From NCBI GenBank assembly GCA_025786725.1, contig JAHLTZ010000033.1:186001-250000 (forward strand): a stretch of DNA of 64,000 nucleotides, read 5' to 3'. Every line of letters starts with the position of its first letter. The stretch's first letter is position 1. This DNA comes from Syncephalis fuscata S228. Taxonomy: Eukaryota; Fungi; Zoopagomycota. Shown here in pieces: positions 1,808-27,489 of the stretch. The translations under genes and the position numbers were made by a program. The notes below the pieces were generated by a model. It was not told where the DNA came from. It saw only the letters and a list, made by a program, of their open reading frames with translations, and did no database searches.

Positions 1808-3220
1808 ATGAACATTACTGAAATAACTGATCTTCTTTCTGACTTGGTACTGGAGAAAGAGCTGAAGAGTATGGATTCCGCCACTAGTACGGCCATCAGA
1901 CTCGTATTGCAGACCGATAAAGACTGGGATTTGTCGCTCAAATGTGCGGAAGAATGGCACAAGGAAGATATTGACGAAACACAAGCTGCTCTTACTTTGG
2001 CAAAATCGAAAAAAGGACCTGCTTGTCGTATGTCGCAACTGCCTCCAGACAATAATTTAAACGGTGTAGAACCGGCCACAGCTGCTTTGATCAGAGTGGA
2101 GCTACAAGTTGAAGACGACTGGCAACAAGCGCTTGATCTAGCTGGCGAGTGGCATACAAAAGATCTTACGAGCCAGGCTGAATCAAGTGCAACAGATACC
2201 GCCAGTAGGTCTTCAAGTGGCAGAAGTACACCTAAAGGCAGGCAACGTGTATCGGCATGCACAGATGCTTGTAATACTCTTAAGGTAGGTATAAGATAGG
2301 ATTATGTTATTGATATGTCTAAAGAAGGATCGAAAGACCACGACCCTTATCGCAGATAGCTCAACCAAATGGCAATGCGGTATTTGTTTTGAAGCATTTA
2401 TTGCGCACCCAGATGGCAAAAATTCCAGTACTATCAAATTATTTGGACGACCACTCGGTTGTGACCACGCTTTCTGCAACGATTGTTTAGGAAAGGCCAT
2501 TTGGGAAAAGGTACGAGAAAAGGACCGTTGCTTTCCTATTCGATGTCCAGAGCCCAAATGTAATCACGAAATTGATGATGATACCGCAGAACGAGCACTG
2601 CGTTACGAAAACTTCAAAGAATGGTGCAATAAAAAAGCATTGCATGCCATTCGATATAAGGTAGGTGATGTTAATTTAGCTGCATATCTACATTTTGAAA
2701 TTATTAAATAACCCATGGTTATTCAGATCTATTGTCCAATACAACGCTGCAGTAAGGTAGTTGAGTTAGATGAAGAAATGCCGGCAAACCAAACAGAAGC
2801 CGAGTGTCCGTACTGCCACACACTTATCTGTATTCAGTGCAGAGTACCATACCACGTAGGTAAGTAATAAACACTATTGTTGTCAGACAAAAATTAATAA
2901 CAATAACAATGAATTAAGGCTTTAGCTGTCGCGACTATCAAAAAATACCAATCTCTGAAAGAACGCCAGAGGATCTGCAAACACTTCAGCTGGTCAATAA
3001 AAAGCTGTGGAGCCGTTGCCCAGATTGTAAGATTTTTGTCGAGCGTACTGCTGGCTGTCCCCACATGTTATGTCGCTGTGGATGTCATTTGTAAGTAAAA
3101 AAAGTATTATGTATTTCAGACTACGCTAAACCACCAATTATATCTAGTTGCTATCATTGTAGTGGCGGATGGGATAAAACTCAGTACCGTTGTGTTAATA
3201 GATGTCAGCCTCGAGTCTAA
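1808..3220 (+). CDS. RBR-type (RING1-IBR-RING2) E3 ubiquitin ligase, 5 exons
   Basis: RING1 CGICF...CDHAFCNDC...CPEPKC; IBR YCPIQRC...CPYCHTLICIQCRVPYH; RING2 RCPDCKIFVERTAGCPHMLCRCGCHFCYHC. Introns include 2285-2324 and 2661-2726; stop TAA at 3218-3220. Confidence 0.88.
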
Positions 3221-3551
3221 TAAACGTACTCAATTTACTATTTAATAATTTGCTATAATTTGACACAAACAGTCATATTTGATAACATTCGCGCAATTAA
3301 ACTACACGTTCGTTTTATTGATCATGGCACCAGGCTGTGAGAAATATCAACAATTATTTAATTTTAGTGTAATAACAATGATATGAATAAATAAAAAATC
3401 AATTAACTCATTATTTTCTGTTTTAACTCATACATTAGTATATGTTTGGTATCAATTGATTTATAATAAATATTAAAATAGTTACGAAAAGAAAGAAGCC
3501 ATCTTTACTTAGTTAATAAAAGTTATTCATATTTAACAAAATTGATCCAAC

Positions 3552-23156: not shown

Positions 23157-25688
23157 ATGACTAAAGAAAGCAAACTTATTCTGGAGCCCAACCGACCCAG
23201 TCTTGAAACAGTTCAAAGCAACAACGGCAACAGCTCTACTACTTCAGAGGCCAACAAAGCAGCGTCCACCGCTACCCATACTACACCTAATGGCCCAGTA
23301 CTTTCACAACTATCACCGTATATAGTTGGCTATCTGGGTATTACACCTTGCTCAGTGCAAGGTTTGGTACGTGTGAAATACCCTTCAGACAAGCCAGTAA
23401 AGGCACGCCGTCTTACTGTGACTCTGACAGGTATTGTCCGCACTAAATGGACTACCCGTACAATTGAACCAGCCGATGGCGCGTTGCACTCTAACGATGG
23501 CCACACAGGCAAGGTGATACGCGAGCACAGTGGACTTCGTGGTAGTTTAGAGGCAAAACTATCGGGTGGTGGCAAATCCGATGCCAAAGGCAGTGGCGGA
23601 AAGAGTGGGGGAAAGTTGTCGTCTAGCACAACGTACAGCTACTCGACTTCAGGCAACAATAATGGTGTAGAAATGGTAGAAATTATACATACACACCAGG
23701 CTGAAGATGTTATATTATCACTATCACAAGATTTATGGCGCACGACAGCCGGTGATGGTTGGGGCACACTAGGTGGGGAGCACGCATTTCCGTTTTATTT
23801 CTCGCTACCGGCCGATTTACCTGACTCATTGGAATCAGAGTTTGGATCGGTACGCTACGTGCTGTCAGCCGTGCTTGAACGACGAGGTCGAATGCTAAAT
23901 ACAGCCGGCCGCAAAGTAGTTGATGTGCCATTAGCCATTCACCGTGCGACGCTCTCTACGCTACATGAATTGACACGTCCACGCAAATGGCAGTCAGATC
24001 CAGCCTGGTCGGCCAGCAGTGGTATTGCCTATGAAATGTCTGTACCAAGAGCGACTTTTGGGCCAGGAGATGCGCTAGAAGCCGTTATAAAGATGAAAAT
24101 AGCATCCCCAGGCAATGTAAGATTTCTAGGGGCCAGTCTTGGGATAAAAGAGTATATTACGTATCGAGCCAACAACATTACACGTACCGAAAGCACCTAT
24201 GTTACTAGTGTGGATATCGATGATCAAGGCCATGTAAAACATACAACTGGCCAGCCACGAGCTATTTCATCTAAAGAATCGGATAAAAAGTCGAAATCCA
24301 CCAATGCAGCCAATGCTGTAGTAAGCAAACCAGCTGGACAAACTGATCGTGTTAATAAAGATGGAACACGTGAGGTGCAACGGACAATTATGATGCTGCG
24401 TGATCCTGATGTTCGTTCCTCGATTACTACACGGCTTATTTCAATCCGGCACAAGTTAAAGCTAAAGCTAAAGCTTGCCGGAGAAAAAGACATTACGGTT
24501 GATTGTCCTAGCTGGCTGACTGGCATAACACGTACTGAATGTCAACAGCTAGAAGATTGGCTGCGTAGTAAGGCAGATGCAACGGCAGTTGCTATAAGAC
24601 AATACACAGACGAAGTTGATCCGCCAAAAGATGCACGGGCACGTCAGCGAGATCGTTATCGTTCTAGTAATAGTTATCATTTGTTGCCAGGCGTTGCACG
24701 TCATGCTATTTATTTACAATTAGCAGATGGTATTGCCGGCCTACCAAGCCATATGACAACAAAGGATGCGTCAGTCGCGTTGGCCGTGGCAGCTCGTGCC
24801 TCAACCGCTCAAGCATCAGGTGATAGCAATGCTGATTCATATGCTTATGTACACTATTCACGCCCAGGTGCACCGCATAGTGGTGTTCCTCAATATGATG
24901 TAAATCAAAAAAATAGGCGATCATTAGCATTTGGCGAACTAGACGATAAAAGTCGAGCCCAGCCTGGTGGCGGCATTGGTCATCGACAAGCACCTATCGG
25001 CAATGAGGCTGATGAGGCAGCACGTCGCTACTCGATGCCGGTATTTCCTGGTGATGGTGCTGATGCGCGAATAGTAAGCGGTCCACCACCCATCGGCTAT
25101 TATGGGGCCAATCCATACTATTCTCCATATAGTCCGTATGGTCCACCACCAGCACCCCATGCTGTGACTACTGGCGCTCCAGCTCATGCATATTATCCAT
25201 ATGGTGCTATGCCTAGTCCTTCGGCACCTTATGGATTTAATGGCCAAATGCCAGATTCTCGTCCAGCACTAGCAGAATCAACGCCACAAAACCCGCAAAA
25301 CGCCAATAATACTACATCAGCCAAAGATAATTCAGCACAAGATAAATCGACTGTATTGACTTCTATTTTAAAAACTACAGCACAATCAGCCACAAATAAC
25401 GAGGACGCAGGAGCAGATAAAAATGGCTGGCGTGAAATACACGACCGTCCCAAGAGTAAAATATTAGTGCCCAAATCATCTGATTCATTTGATTTGAAGG
25501 GCAATAATACGCGATTGACCGAACAGGAGGATAGTGAAGAAAGCGATTGGGAGGACGAAGATGAAGAGAAAGATCCATTGGCTTCAGTAAGAGCGCGTCA
25601 GCTGCGTAAGAACGATAAAGATTTACCTCACTTGCCAACAAGACCGGTTATTCATGACCTTAAAGCATATAGCTCTTCTACCAAGTAG
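23157..25688 (+). CDS. Alpha-arrestin (arrestin N and C domains) with long Pro/Tyr-rich disordered tail
   Basis: GLVRV...[55 protein letters not shown]; single 843-aa ORF. Confidence 0.85.
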   Translation: MTKESKLILEPNRPSLETVQSNNGNSSTTSEANKAASTATHTTPNGPVLSQLSPYIVGYLGITPCSVQGLVRVKYPSDKPVKARRLTVTLTGIVRTKWTTRTIEPADGALHSNDGHTGKVIREHSGLRGSLEAKLSGGGKSDAKGSGGKSGGKLSSSTTYSYSTSGNNNGVEMVEIIHTHQAEDVILSLSQDLWRTTAGDGWGTLGGEHAFPFYFSLPADLPDSLESEFGSVRYVLSAVLERRGRMLNTAGRKVVDVPLAIHRATLSTLHELTRPRKWQSDPAWSASSGIAYEMSVPRATFGPGDALEAVIKMKIASPGNVRFLGASLGIKEYITYRANNITRTESTYVTSVDIDDQGHVKHTTGQPRAISSKESDKKSKSTNAANAVVSKPAGQTDRVNKDGTREVQRTIMMLRDPDVRSSITTRLISIRHKLKLKLKLAGEKDITVDCPSWLTGITRTECQQLEDWLRSKADATAVAIRQYTDEVDPPKDARARQRDRYRSSNSYHLLPGVARHAIYLQLADGIAGLPSHMTTKDASVALAVAARASTAQASGDSNADSYAYVHYSRPGAPHSGVPQYDVNQKNRRSLAFGELDDKSRAQPGGGIGHRQAPIGNEADEAARRYSMPVFPGDGADARIVSGPPPIGYYGANPYYSPYSPYGPPPAPHAVTTGAPAHAYYPYGAMPSPSAPYGFNGQMPDSRPALAESTPQNPQNANNTTSAKDNSAQDKSTVLTSILKTTAQSATNNEDAGADKNGWREIHDRPKSKILVPKSSDSFDLKGNNTRLTEQEDSEESDWEDEDEEKDPLASVRARQLRKNDKDLPHLPTRPVIHDLKAYSSSTK

Positions 25689-25775: not shown

Positions 25776-26604
25776 CTATTGAACTAGTGGTTTAACATTT
25801 TGTATTGTACTTGGATGTGTTTTACGTGCCAATTTTAATGTGTTAATTGCGCGTATTAGATCACTTTTAATTTGTGAAAACTCTGCTGTTAACGCTTCTA
25901 ATCGAGCGATTAACAGGAAATCGCATGCTATTAAAAAGAGTAGTTTAGCATTTTATGATCACTAGCTTTAATCAAACTTACACGAGATGGCATGTGTGGG
26001 TAGGATCTCATAAGCTGCTGCTGTTAGTCGTCGTCGAGCTCGATTACGCTTTACGGCTAATTTACTAATAGTCTTCTTCGAAGCAAGATATCCAACTCTT
26101 TGCCCAGTTATTGGTTGACCCGACTTCCGATCTGTGTAGAAGAATAATTAACATTTTTTAGTAACATTTGCCATAATAATGTGCATACCAACAGGCGGCT
26201 TTCTATTTGACCATGGCCGAGCAGCAAGTACAAACGTATTAGAGTGATATCGAGGGAGTCTTCCCGACATCATAGGAAGAAATGAATTCCTATCTAACGA
26301 ATAAATCAACTAGTTATAGTCGAAGACGACAAAAGCATTAATTTTCCGCAGTTAGCAATAGCCGTTTGCTTACCTTGTTGTTTTCTGATTTGGCTGTAGC
26401 TGCTCTAATGTTATTTAGTTTATTCACTGTTTTTTGTCGATATATTTTTGAGCCTTTTGGCTTAGTTTGTAGATATACCCTTCCAGCTGTATTAATATTG
26501 GGCTTTAGTAAATTAAAGCTATCACTATAAGGTATAAAGCTATGGTGAATTTGTTGTGGCCGTAGCATGGCCAATATACCAGAGTTGAAAATGGATTTTA
26601 ACAT
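25776..26604 (-). CDS. rnpA: Bacterial-type ribonuclease P protein component (RnpA-like) with N-terminal extension, probably mitochondrial; 4 exons, 217 aa
   Basis: Exons 26604-26374, 26309-26189, 26131-25982 and 25927-25776 join through GT-AG introns into one open frame: ...LDRNSFLPMMSGRLPRYHSNTFVLAARP...RVGYLASKKTISKLAVKRNRARRRLTAAAYEILPTHAISSCDFLLIARLEALTAEFSQIKSDLIRAI. Contains the RNR motif. Confidence 0.88.
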
Positions 26605-27489
26605 AGTGAATGGGTTGTTAATAGCGCCAGTATTATTATATCGATAGTACAATAAATATACTTTAAGATGTATCTTATTTATGATACTATACGATTACGC
26701 TAAAGTAATCCCGTCGCGTTTTGTGAATGTGCATACATTAAACAGTTTCGACAGTAGCGTAAAACAAAATAAAATGGATGTGTAAGTAAAAAATGTGTTA
26801 TGTCCATACATGGTAATTCACAATGTCCAGCTCATTCAGGTTTTTTGCCAGTTATACGTATACATTTACTTTTATTCTTGATGCTATTTATGTGTATACG
26901 TGAAGTAACCATATAGAATAGCCTTTATCACCAAAGAAGACATATTAATACTTTACCATATATTTTATATATATGTTCTGTATTTGCTGCATTTATTTCT
27001 ATTAAATATTATAGTTTATTGAAAATAATAGGTTTTTGCACATTGTGTTTATTTCGAATAATATACTAGTAGATATGTTTTTGGCTGTCTTTTAGCAACT
27101 TGGGTTGCAACTAATAGTCTATAGGTCATACTAACATATGTATTAGTAGTTTGTTTATATGTAAATAATTGCTTATATTAGAGCAATCAATTTCAAGCTG
27201 AAATTATTGATGTTCTATATCGTAACTAATCAGTACTGCTGTGTTACTCTCACATAAACGACATAACTATTGCGTCACCCAGTATGGCGGGAATGATTTG
27301 CAGCTGTATACGAAAAAAAGCAGCGATATTACAGATAGCGCTAATTAATATAGCTTATTGTGTTACAATAAAAAAGAATGACGCGTACAGTCGCCTATGC
27401 GAATAGCTTGTGTTAAATTGCGTATGCCATGACCATTAATACTGCCATATTAACTATATTATTTGTCAATAGCTTTTATTTTTGTTAAA

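Follow-up and report, generated by a model that had tools for sequence, protein, structure and literature searches.

A bacterial-type RNase P protein in a spliced nuclear gene of the fungus Syncephalis fuscata, a candidate partner of mitochondrial RNase P RNA

The nuclear genome of the mycoparasitic zoopagomycotan fungus Syncephalis fuscata S228 contains an expressed gene for a genuine bacterial-type RNase P protein (RnpA). The gene was found in a window of 64,000 nucleotides (positions 186,001 to 250,000 of contig JAHLTZ010000033.1, assembly GCA_025786725.1), and all coordinates given below without further label count from the first letter of that stretch. It is likely that the product is imported into mitochondria and serves there in a bacteria-like, RNA-based RNase P as its protein subunit; its localisation, its rnpB partner, and its activity are what we infer. 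New here is the presence of RnpA in fungi, and hence in opisthokonts, since nuclear RnpA itself is already known from prasinophyte algae and from the jakobid Andalucia. No report of RnpA in fungi was found in the literature searched, and an earlier mention is possible.

The gene runs along the minus strand from 26604 to 25776, and its four exons of 231, 121, 150, and 152 nt join to 654 nt, which upon recomputation comprise 217 codons and a TAG with no internal stops. Exon 1 (26604-26374, minus strand, 231 nt) carries the start codon, an ATG at 26604, together with a 77-aa N-terminal extension, and is followed by intron 1 (26373-26310, minus strand), 64 nt of the form GTAAGC..TAG in phase 0. 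Exon 2 (26309-26189, minus strand, 121 nt) specifies residues 78-117 and base 1 of codon 118, which correspond to helix 1 and strands 1-2. Intron 2 (26188-26132, minus strand, 57 nt, GTATGC..CAG, phase 1) leads to exon 3 (26131-25982, minus strand, 150 nt, residues 118-168), which supplies strand 3 (RVGY), the SKK element, and helix 2. Within this helix lies the RNR motif AVKRNRARRRL (residues 143-153; 26057-26025, minus strand), the P-RNA-binding signature of RnpA. After intron 3 (25981-25928, minus strand, 54 nt, GTAAGT..TAG, phase 1), exon 4 (25927-25776, minus strand, 152 nt including the TAG, residues 168-217) provides strand 4 (DFLLIAR) and helix 3.

The initial annotation had proposed four exons with GT-AG introns of 64, 57, and 54 nt, an open 217-aa frame of which exon 1 alone would be seen as a conventional ORF, and an RNR motif at the position given above. 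Recomputation returned the same structure and the same motif position, and the ORF that reveals exon 1 lies at 26338-26652. The spliced model is identical over 217 aa to GenBank KAI9592631.1, an S. fuscata "hypothetical protein" retrieved by an exhaustive search with exon 3. A six-frame scan of the S. fuscata genome gives one Ribonuclease_P locus (30.3 bits).

Evidence for splicing comes from a public sequencing run (X1) of 2017, stored as contigs, whose RNA nature is a guess and which is the sole public run with the RnpA stretch. A 790-nt contig of this run maps to 25787-26751 and lacks exactly 25928-25981, 26132-26188, and 26310-26373, that is, introns 3, 2, and 1; the gaps have CT..AC ends on the plus strand, which are GT..AG on the RnpA strand. 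Because the contig is without three canonical introns, it represents cDNA, and all three junctions are thus used in vivo, at the places that the initial annotation had proposed. The contig stops 9 nt before the RnpA stop codon at its 3' end and extends 147 nt beyond the ATG at its 5' end (26751). Consequently, the transcribed 5' leader (26605-26751, minus strand) is at least 147 nt long. It contains two upstream ATGs, one in frame at 26748, which runs into a TAG after 12 codons, and one out of frame at 26744; both are possible uORFs. Given the closure of the in-frame ATG, the N-terminus of RnpA cannot extend further. On the other side, the convergent downstream neighbour is an arrestin-domain gene of 843 aa (23157-25688, plus strand). 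A transcript contig of this neighbour reaches 25763, 13 nt from the RnpA stop codon (25776-25778), so the 3' ends of the two genes abut or overlap somewhere between 25688 and 25787.

The assignment to the RnpA family, also made in the initial annotation, is borne out by profile, fold, and motif alike. The whole product matches Pfam Ribonuclease_P (PF00825) with 45.3 bits (E 9.7e-12; gathering cut-off 22.3) over residues 96-198 and profile positions 21-108 of 109, and exon 3 by itself reaches 25.8 bits, above the gathering score. The stricter TIGR00188 equivalog, with a cut-off of 38.35 bits, gives 29.6 for S. fuscata, below that value. Among the other fungal proteins (see below), Syncephalis plumigaleata scores 38.0, B. 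ranarum 38.5, which is barely above the cut-off, and Piptocephalis cylindrospora 20.7, while Piptocephalis tieghemiana has no match. By these scores, S. fuscata RnpA is a clear yet divergent member of the family.

An AlphaFold2 model made from a 57-row alignment is confident at residues 80-200, with block-mean pLDDT values of 83-98. Its elements are helices at 84-92, 143-164, and 184-197 and strands at 97-99, 103-109, 129-133, and 169-175; this order of a helix, three strands, a long helix, a strand, and a helix is the published RnpA topology (PMC4919922). When the model was compared with the PDB by Foldseek, ranks 1-16 were all bacterial RNase P proteins, the best being that of Bacillus subtilis (1A6F; TM 0.82 by target, rmsd 1.9 A), and 30 of 30 look-alike clusters in the ESM Atlas were RnpA. 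Searches by sequence against the PDB gave no match for exon 3 and a single weak one (E 0.098) for the full protein.

The columns of AVKRNRARRRL are 100% conserved in 51 bacterial rows, and S. fuscata is identical at all 11. Across the six fungal proteins, this block is also the best conserved part, with R146, N147, R151, and R152 invariant in every one. When a conserved column is taken as one shared by at least 80% of the 51 bacterial rows, the fungal protein further keeps R129, G131, S135, K137, P162, A165, D170, I174, A175, R176, D190, L191, and A194, as well as R84, F87, and L88 in helix 1; other such columns are changed, for example, G141K, T133L, and Q106A. In the central cleft and helix 1, R84, F87, L88, and Y132 agree with the bacterial consensus, but several adjacent conserved columns differ. 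Residues of this region are presumed to hold the pre-tRNA leader.

The searches yielded six eukaryotic relatives, counting S. fuscata itself, all from Zoopagomycota and all deposited as hypothetical proteins: S. fuscata (217 aa), S. plumigaleata (115 aa as deposited, KAI8056995.1), P. tieghemiana (207 aa), P. cylindrospora (193 aa), B. ranarum (141 aa as deposited), and Basidiobolus meristosporus (58 aa, partial). A word search with the full protein gave only the self match, and profile searches with four and with six of the fungal sequences added two fungal proteins, all remaining matches being bacterial RnpA. RnpA was not found in other fungi by these searches, which were word-limited or used one 49-aa exon and are weak evidence for absence. 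Six long hits (193-233 aa) that might have been eukaryotic precursors were dismissed, being GC-rich and having alpha-type cores preceded by what are apparently over-extensions of the gene call.

In S. plumigaleata, the RnpA gene is again convergent with an arrestin gene. The deposited protein KAI8056995.1 (JAIXMF010000002.1; positions 2663-3474 of our locus L002) is truncated at the 5' side, with exon 1 and the start of exon 2 left out. The missing exon 1 lies at L002:2663-2893 and is an open stretch of 231 nt encoding 77 aa, of which 14 are K or R and 1 is D or E. With this upstream exon and the start of exon 2 restored, the gene has the four-exon structure seen in S. fuscata. The position and phase of introns 2 and 3, both in phase 1, are common to Syncephalis, Piptocephalis, and Basidiobolus, among them P. 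tieghemiana and B. ranarum; intron 2 splits the codon right before the [RK]-K-[ST] block and intron 3 the codon right before [CF]-D-[FY]. These shared introns indicate that an intron-bearing nuclear gene already existed before the divergence of Zoopagomycotina and Basidiobolus. The nuclear location claimed at the outset is thus upheld by the arrestin-domain neighbour, the spliceosomal introns, and the synteny in the sister species.

With regard to origin, several observations point to the Alphaproteobacteria. Rickettsiales, Dongia, Glycocaulis, and other Alphaproteobacteria head the named bacterial matches to the fungal profile, and the wording RNRARRRL[RK][AE] is almost confined to that class among the bacterial genomes scanned, in a scan that itself selects by the same pattern. 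For a phylogeny, samples were drawn evenly: 70 genomes of Pseudomonadota (65 rows used), 30 rows from the class around one member, and 16 rows of Bacillota, to which 18 named Alphaproteobacteria were added as markers. The tree (IQ-TREE; 135 rows, 117 columns) included five fungal proteins. These group in a single clade (UFBoot 97 / SH-aLRT 89), which lies inside a clade of 70 tips (91/90) that also holds all 30 class rows, all 18 named Alphaproteobacteria, 16 of the 65 phylum rows, and 1 Binatia; the remaining 49 Pseudomonadota and the Bacillota fall outside. The supports for placement within this alpha-type clade are 13-65. In an AU test, the alternative "fungi + non-alpha Pseudomonadota" had p 0.047 (delta lnL 51.4). 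This borderline result carries little weight, because the group was chosen with the tree already in view and the constraint is confounded in that it also forces the non-alpha rows together. Judged from the tree, the fungal RnpA is, with moderate support, alphaproteobacterial in type, and the alphaproteobacteria-like wording that had been noticed from the sequence alone finds its counterpart in the nesting of the fungal clade.

Three side observations were made on the tree. Within the fungal clade, Basidiobolus joins Syncephalis (99/90) with Piptocephalis outside, against the expected species tree; this is probably a long-branch effect of Piptocephalis. A 2.6-kb contig in an Oscillospiraceae MAG (L048 / L085) has an alpha-type RnpA inside the alphaproteobacterial clade and is probably mis-binned. 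Candidatus Caedibacter acanthamoebae (CP008936.1; L041 / G001) belongs to the Gammaproteobacteria (Thiotrichales) by its NCBI names, but its RnpA is alpha-type, and the GTDB class sample around it clusters wholly with the named Alphaproteobacteria.

The initial annotation went further and regarded the gene as derived from the endosymbiont. The alphaproteobacterial affinity stands, but the data do not separate descent from the endosymbiont from a later transfer. Vertical descent from the mitochondrial endosymbiont is a serious possibility; the Zoopagomycota would then be the sole known opisthokonts with a complete bacterial RNase P, made of nuclear RnpA and mitochondrial rnpB. If so, the ancestral holoenzyme survived into crown fungi, and numerous fungal and animal lineages each lost its protein or came to use another in its place: Rpm2 in yeasts, PRORP in animals, and other proteins elsewhere. 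It is rather unlikely, though by no means far-fetched, that the protein has the same role and another origin, having entered the ancestor of the Zoopagomycota by horizontal transfer from an alphaproteobacterium, with the introns and the extension gained later. Basidiobolus is reported to hold many bacterial transfers. In addition, among eukaryotic proteins, the searches found only three genera of Zoopagomycota, so vertical descent would need many independent losses across fungi and other opisthokonts; furthermore, the fungal clade is nested inside the sampled Alphaproteobacteria rather than sister to them, though without support. However, that placement is weakly supported, as noted above, and the missing matches in other fungi come from searches limited to words or a 49-aa exon. 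Moreover, the two shared phase-1 introns mean that the nuclear gene predates the split between Zoopagomycotina and Basidiobolus, and Andalucia and the prasinophytes also keep RnpA, a punctate pattern that has been read as ancestral (PMC7050145).

The 77-aa extension encoded by exon 1 bears on where the protein may act. It is basic (13 K+R, 2 D+E), as the initial annotation had stated. Bacterial RnpA is without one; comparable extensions are present in S. plumigaleata and in both Piptocephalis proteins. The first acidic residue is D28. In the first 30 residues, the only basic ones are K3 and R15, and the hydrophobic moment is a modest 0.33. The extension is modelled with low confidence (pLDDT 47-58), residues 1-56 being disordered, and an N-terminal helix is absent from the model. 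Between S. fuscata and S. plumigaleata, the RnpA domain shares 64.5% identity, as against 25% for exon 1; the two exons are nonetheless homologous, with an alignment score of 49, whereas 300 shuffles gave 18 at most. A leader that evolves fast and is basic but poor in acidic residues, set before a domain under constraint, is what one expects of an imported organellar protein. Exon 1 is a candidate mitochondrial presequence plus linker, its composition being compatible with a presequence without proving one, and the protein is probably imported into mitochondria. The second half of the extension is rich in lysine and might just as well direct the protein elsewhere.

The favoured reading, a mitochondrial RNase P subunit, can be set out as follows. 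The 217-aa precursor would be synthesised in the cytosol and imported into mitochondria by means of the N-terminal extension of exon 1. There, the RnpA domain of about 120 aa would bind a mitochondrially encoded, bacteria-like rnpB through the RNR helix. The central cleft would hold the 5' leader of mitochondrial pre-tRNAs, and the RNA subunit would perform the cleavage, as in bacteria. S. fuscata RnpA is thereby a candidate for the protein that works with the bacteria-like mitochondrial RNase P RNA in "zygomycete" fungi. An rnpB gene was present in every zygomycete mtDNA examined, mostly near the bacterial consensus, and the protein subunits were given as unidentified at the time of that survey (PMC3790967, section 2.2.2). 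In Smittium culisetae, also of the Zoopagomycota, there is a short rnpB of which P1 and P4 are left (PMC3790967), and a bacterial-type binding site is therefore not to be taken for granted. For S. fuscata itself, both cox1 and cob are absent from the assembly, which therefore is without mtDNA; consequently, a scan of that assembly with RF00010, which gave no match, is uninformative for a mitochondrial rnpB. Searches of the S. fuscata genome for PRORP and Rpm2, run without a positive control, gave no signal. Fungi are described as being without PRORP (PMC10941002), and according to reviews, neither nuclear nor archaeal RNase P contains a homolog of bacterial RnpA, and Rpm2 is restricted to budding yeasts.

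It could be argued instead that the RnpA fold has been kept and recruited to another RNA-binding role, whether nuclear, cytosolic, or mitochondrial, without a bacterial-type P RNA. The mitochondrial RNA partner is putative in this species, the protein is divergent by TIGR00188, its extension is lysine-rich in the second half, and the reduced Smittium rnpB (PMC3790967) would be in keeping with such a change. Furthermore, RnpA of Staphylococcus aureus has been linked to mRNA degradation, to go by the title of PDB entry 6OV1. Recruitment of this kind is nevertheless improbable, because the RNR block, which defines P-RNA binding and has P RNA as its only known partner, is better conserved than any other part of the six fungal proteins; in addition, the genome gave no sign of any other mitochondrial RNase P protein known so far, again in searches that had no positive control. 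A bacterial contaminant of the assembly or a dead relic is the least credible reading of all and is refuted; the nearest non-fungal relatives are indeed bacterial, but three spliceosomal introns are removed in RNA, the 289-kb contig carries eukaryotic neighbours in an order kept in S. plumigaleata, and the frame is open with its motifs conserved and a domain as similar between the two Syncephalis species as stated above.

A comparison with known systems places the mitochondrial RNase P subunit proposed here in context. The fungal protein resembles bacterial RnpA (C5 or P protein; PF00825), especially that of Alphaproteobacteria, in its RNRARRRL wording and its alpha-type tree placement. In contrast to bacterial RnpA, it is encoded by a nuclear gene with three introns, carries the 77-aa N-terminal extension, lies outside any rpmH-rnpA operon context, and, in S. 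fuscata, scores under the TIGR00188 equivalog cut-off. Rpm2 and PRORP perform the same task as that proposed for fungal RnpA, the 5' maturation of mitochondrial pre-tRNAs, but are unrelated in sequence and fold.

Parallels are also found in two other groups of eukaryotes, with which the comparison is by description. In prasinophyte algae, bacterial-type RnpA is nuclear, and the one from Ostreococcus functions together with organellar P RNAs and can complement E. coli rnpA, according to the passage of PMC4919922 that cites Lai et al. 2011. The likeness lies in a nuclear gene in a eukaryote and in organelles that encode P RNA. The prasinophytes differ in being green-algal hosts with plastids, and the compartment of their protein is unsettled, whereas S. 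fuscata is a plastid-less fungus, in which the mitochondrion is thus the only candidate compartment with a bacterial-type RNA. The jakobid Andalucia godoyi has a nuclear, mitochondrion-targeted RnpA, counted among the ancestral traits whose distribution is "highly punctate" (PMC7050145, and again PMC12699882). Here, too, the mitochondria encode a bacterial-type P RNA and import of a nuclear RnpA into them is predicted, but Andalucia is a jakobid with the most bacteria-like mtDNA known, and its RnpA is called highly diverged (PMC7050145), whereas Syncephalis belongs to the crown-group fungi. The background given in the initial annotation, namely, Rpm2 in budding yeast, PRORP in animals, and rnpB in zygomycete mtDNAs, agrees with PMC3790967, but it left the nuclear RnpA of prasinophytes (PMC4919922) and of Andalucia (PMC7050145) unmentioned.

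For fungi other than budding yeast, which has Rpm2, a 2012 review (PMC3790967) listed the protein component of mitochondrial RNase P as unidentified. A conserved, expressed nuclear RnpA in the Zoopagomycota is a concrete candidate for that component. It would extend the punctate distribution of eukaryotic RnpA, known from prasinophytes and Andalucia, to the opisthokonts, and it is relevant to the number and order of the events by which the ancestral ribonucleoprotein enzyme has been replaced during mitochondrial evolution.

The analysis also corrects public annotation, in which six fungal RnpA proteins are filed as "hypothetical" and at least one gene model, that of S. plumigaleata, is truncated. 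In B. ranarum (JASJQH010001325.1; positions 1450-1540 of our locus L003), the 141-aa model begins within helix 1 of the RnpA fold, and the frame is open upstream to an ATG 26 codons earlier.
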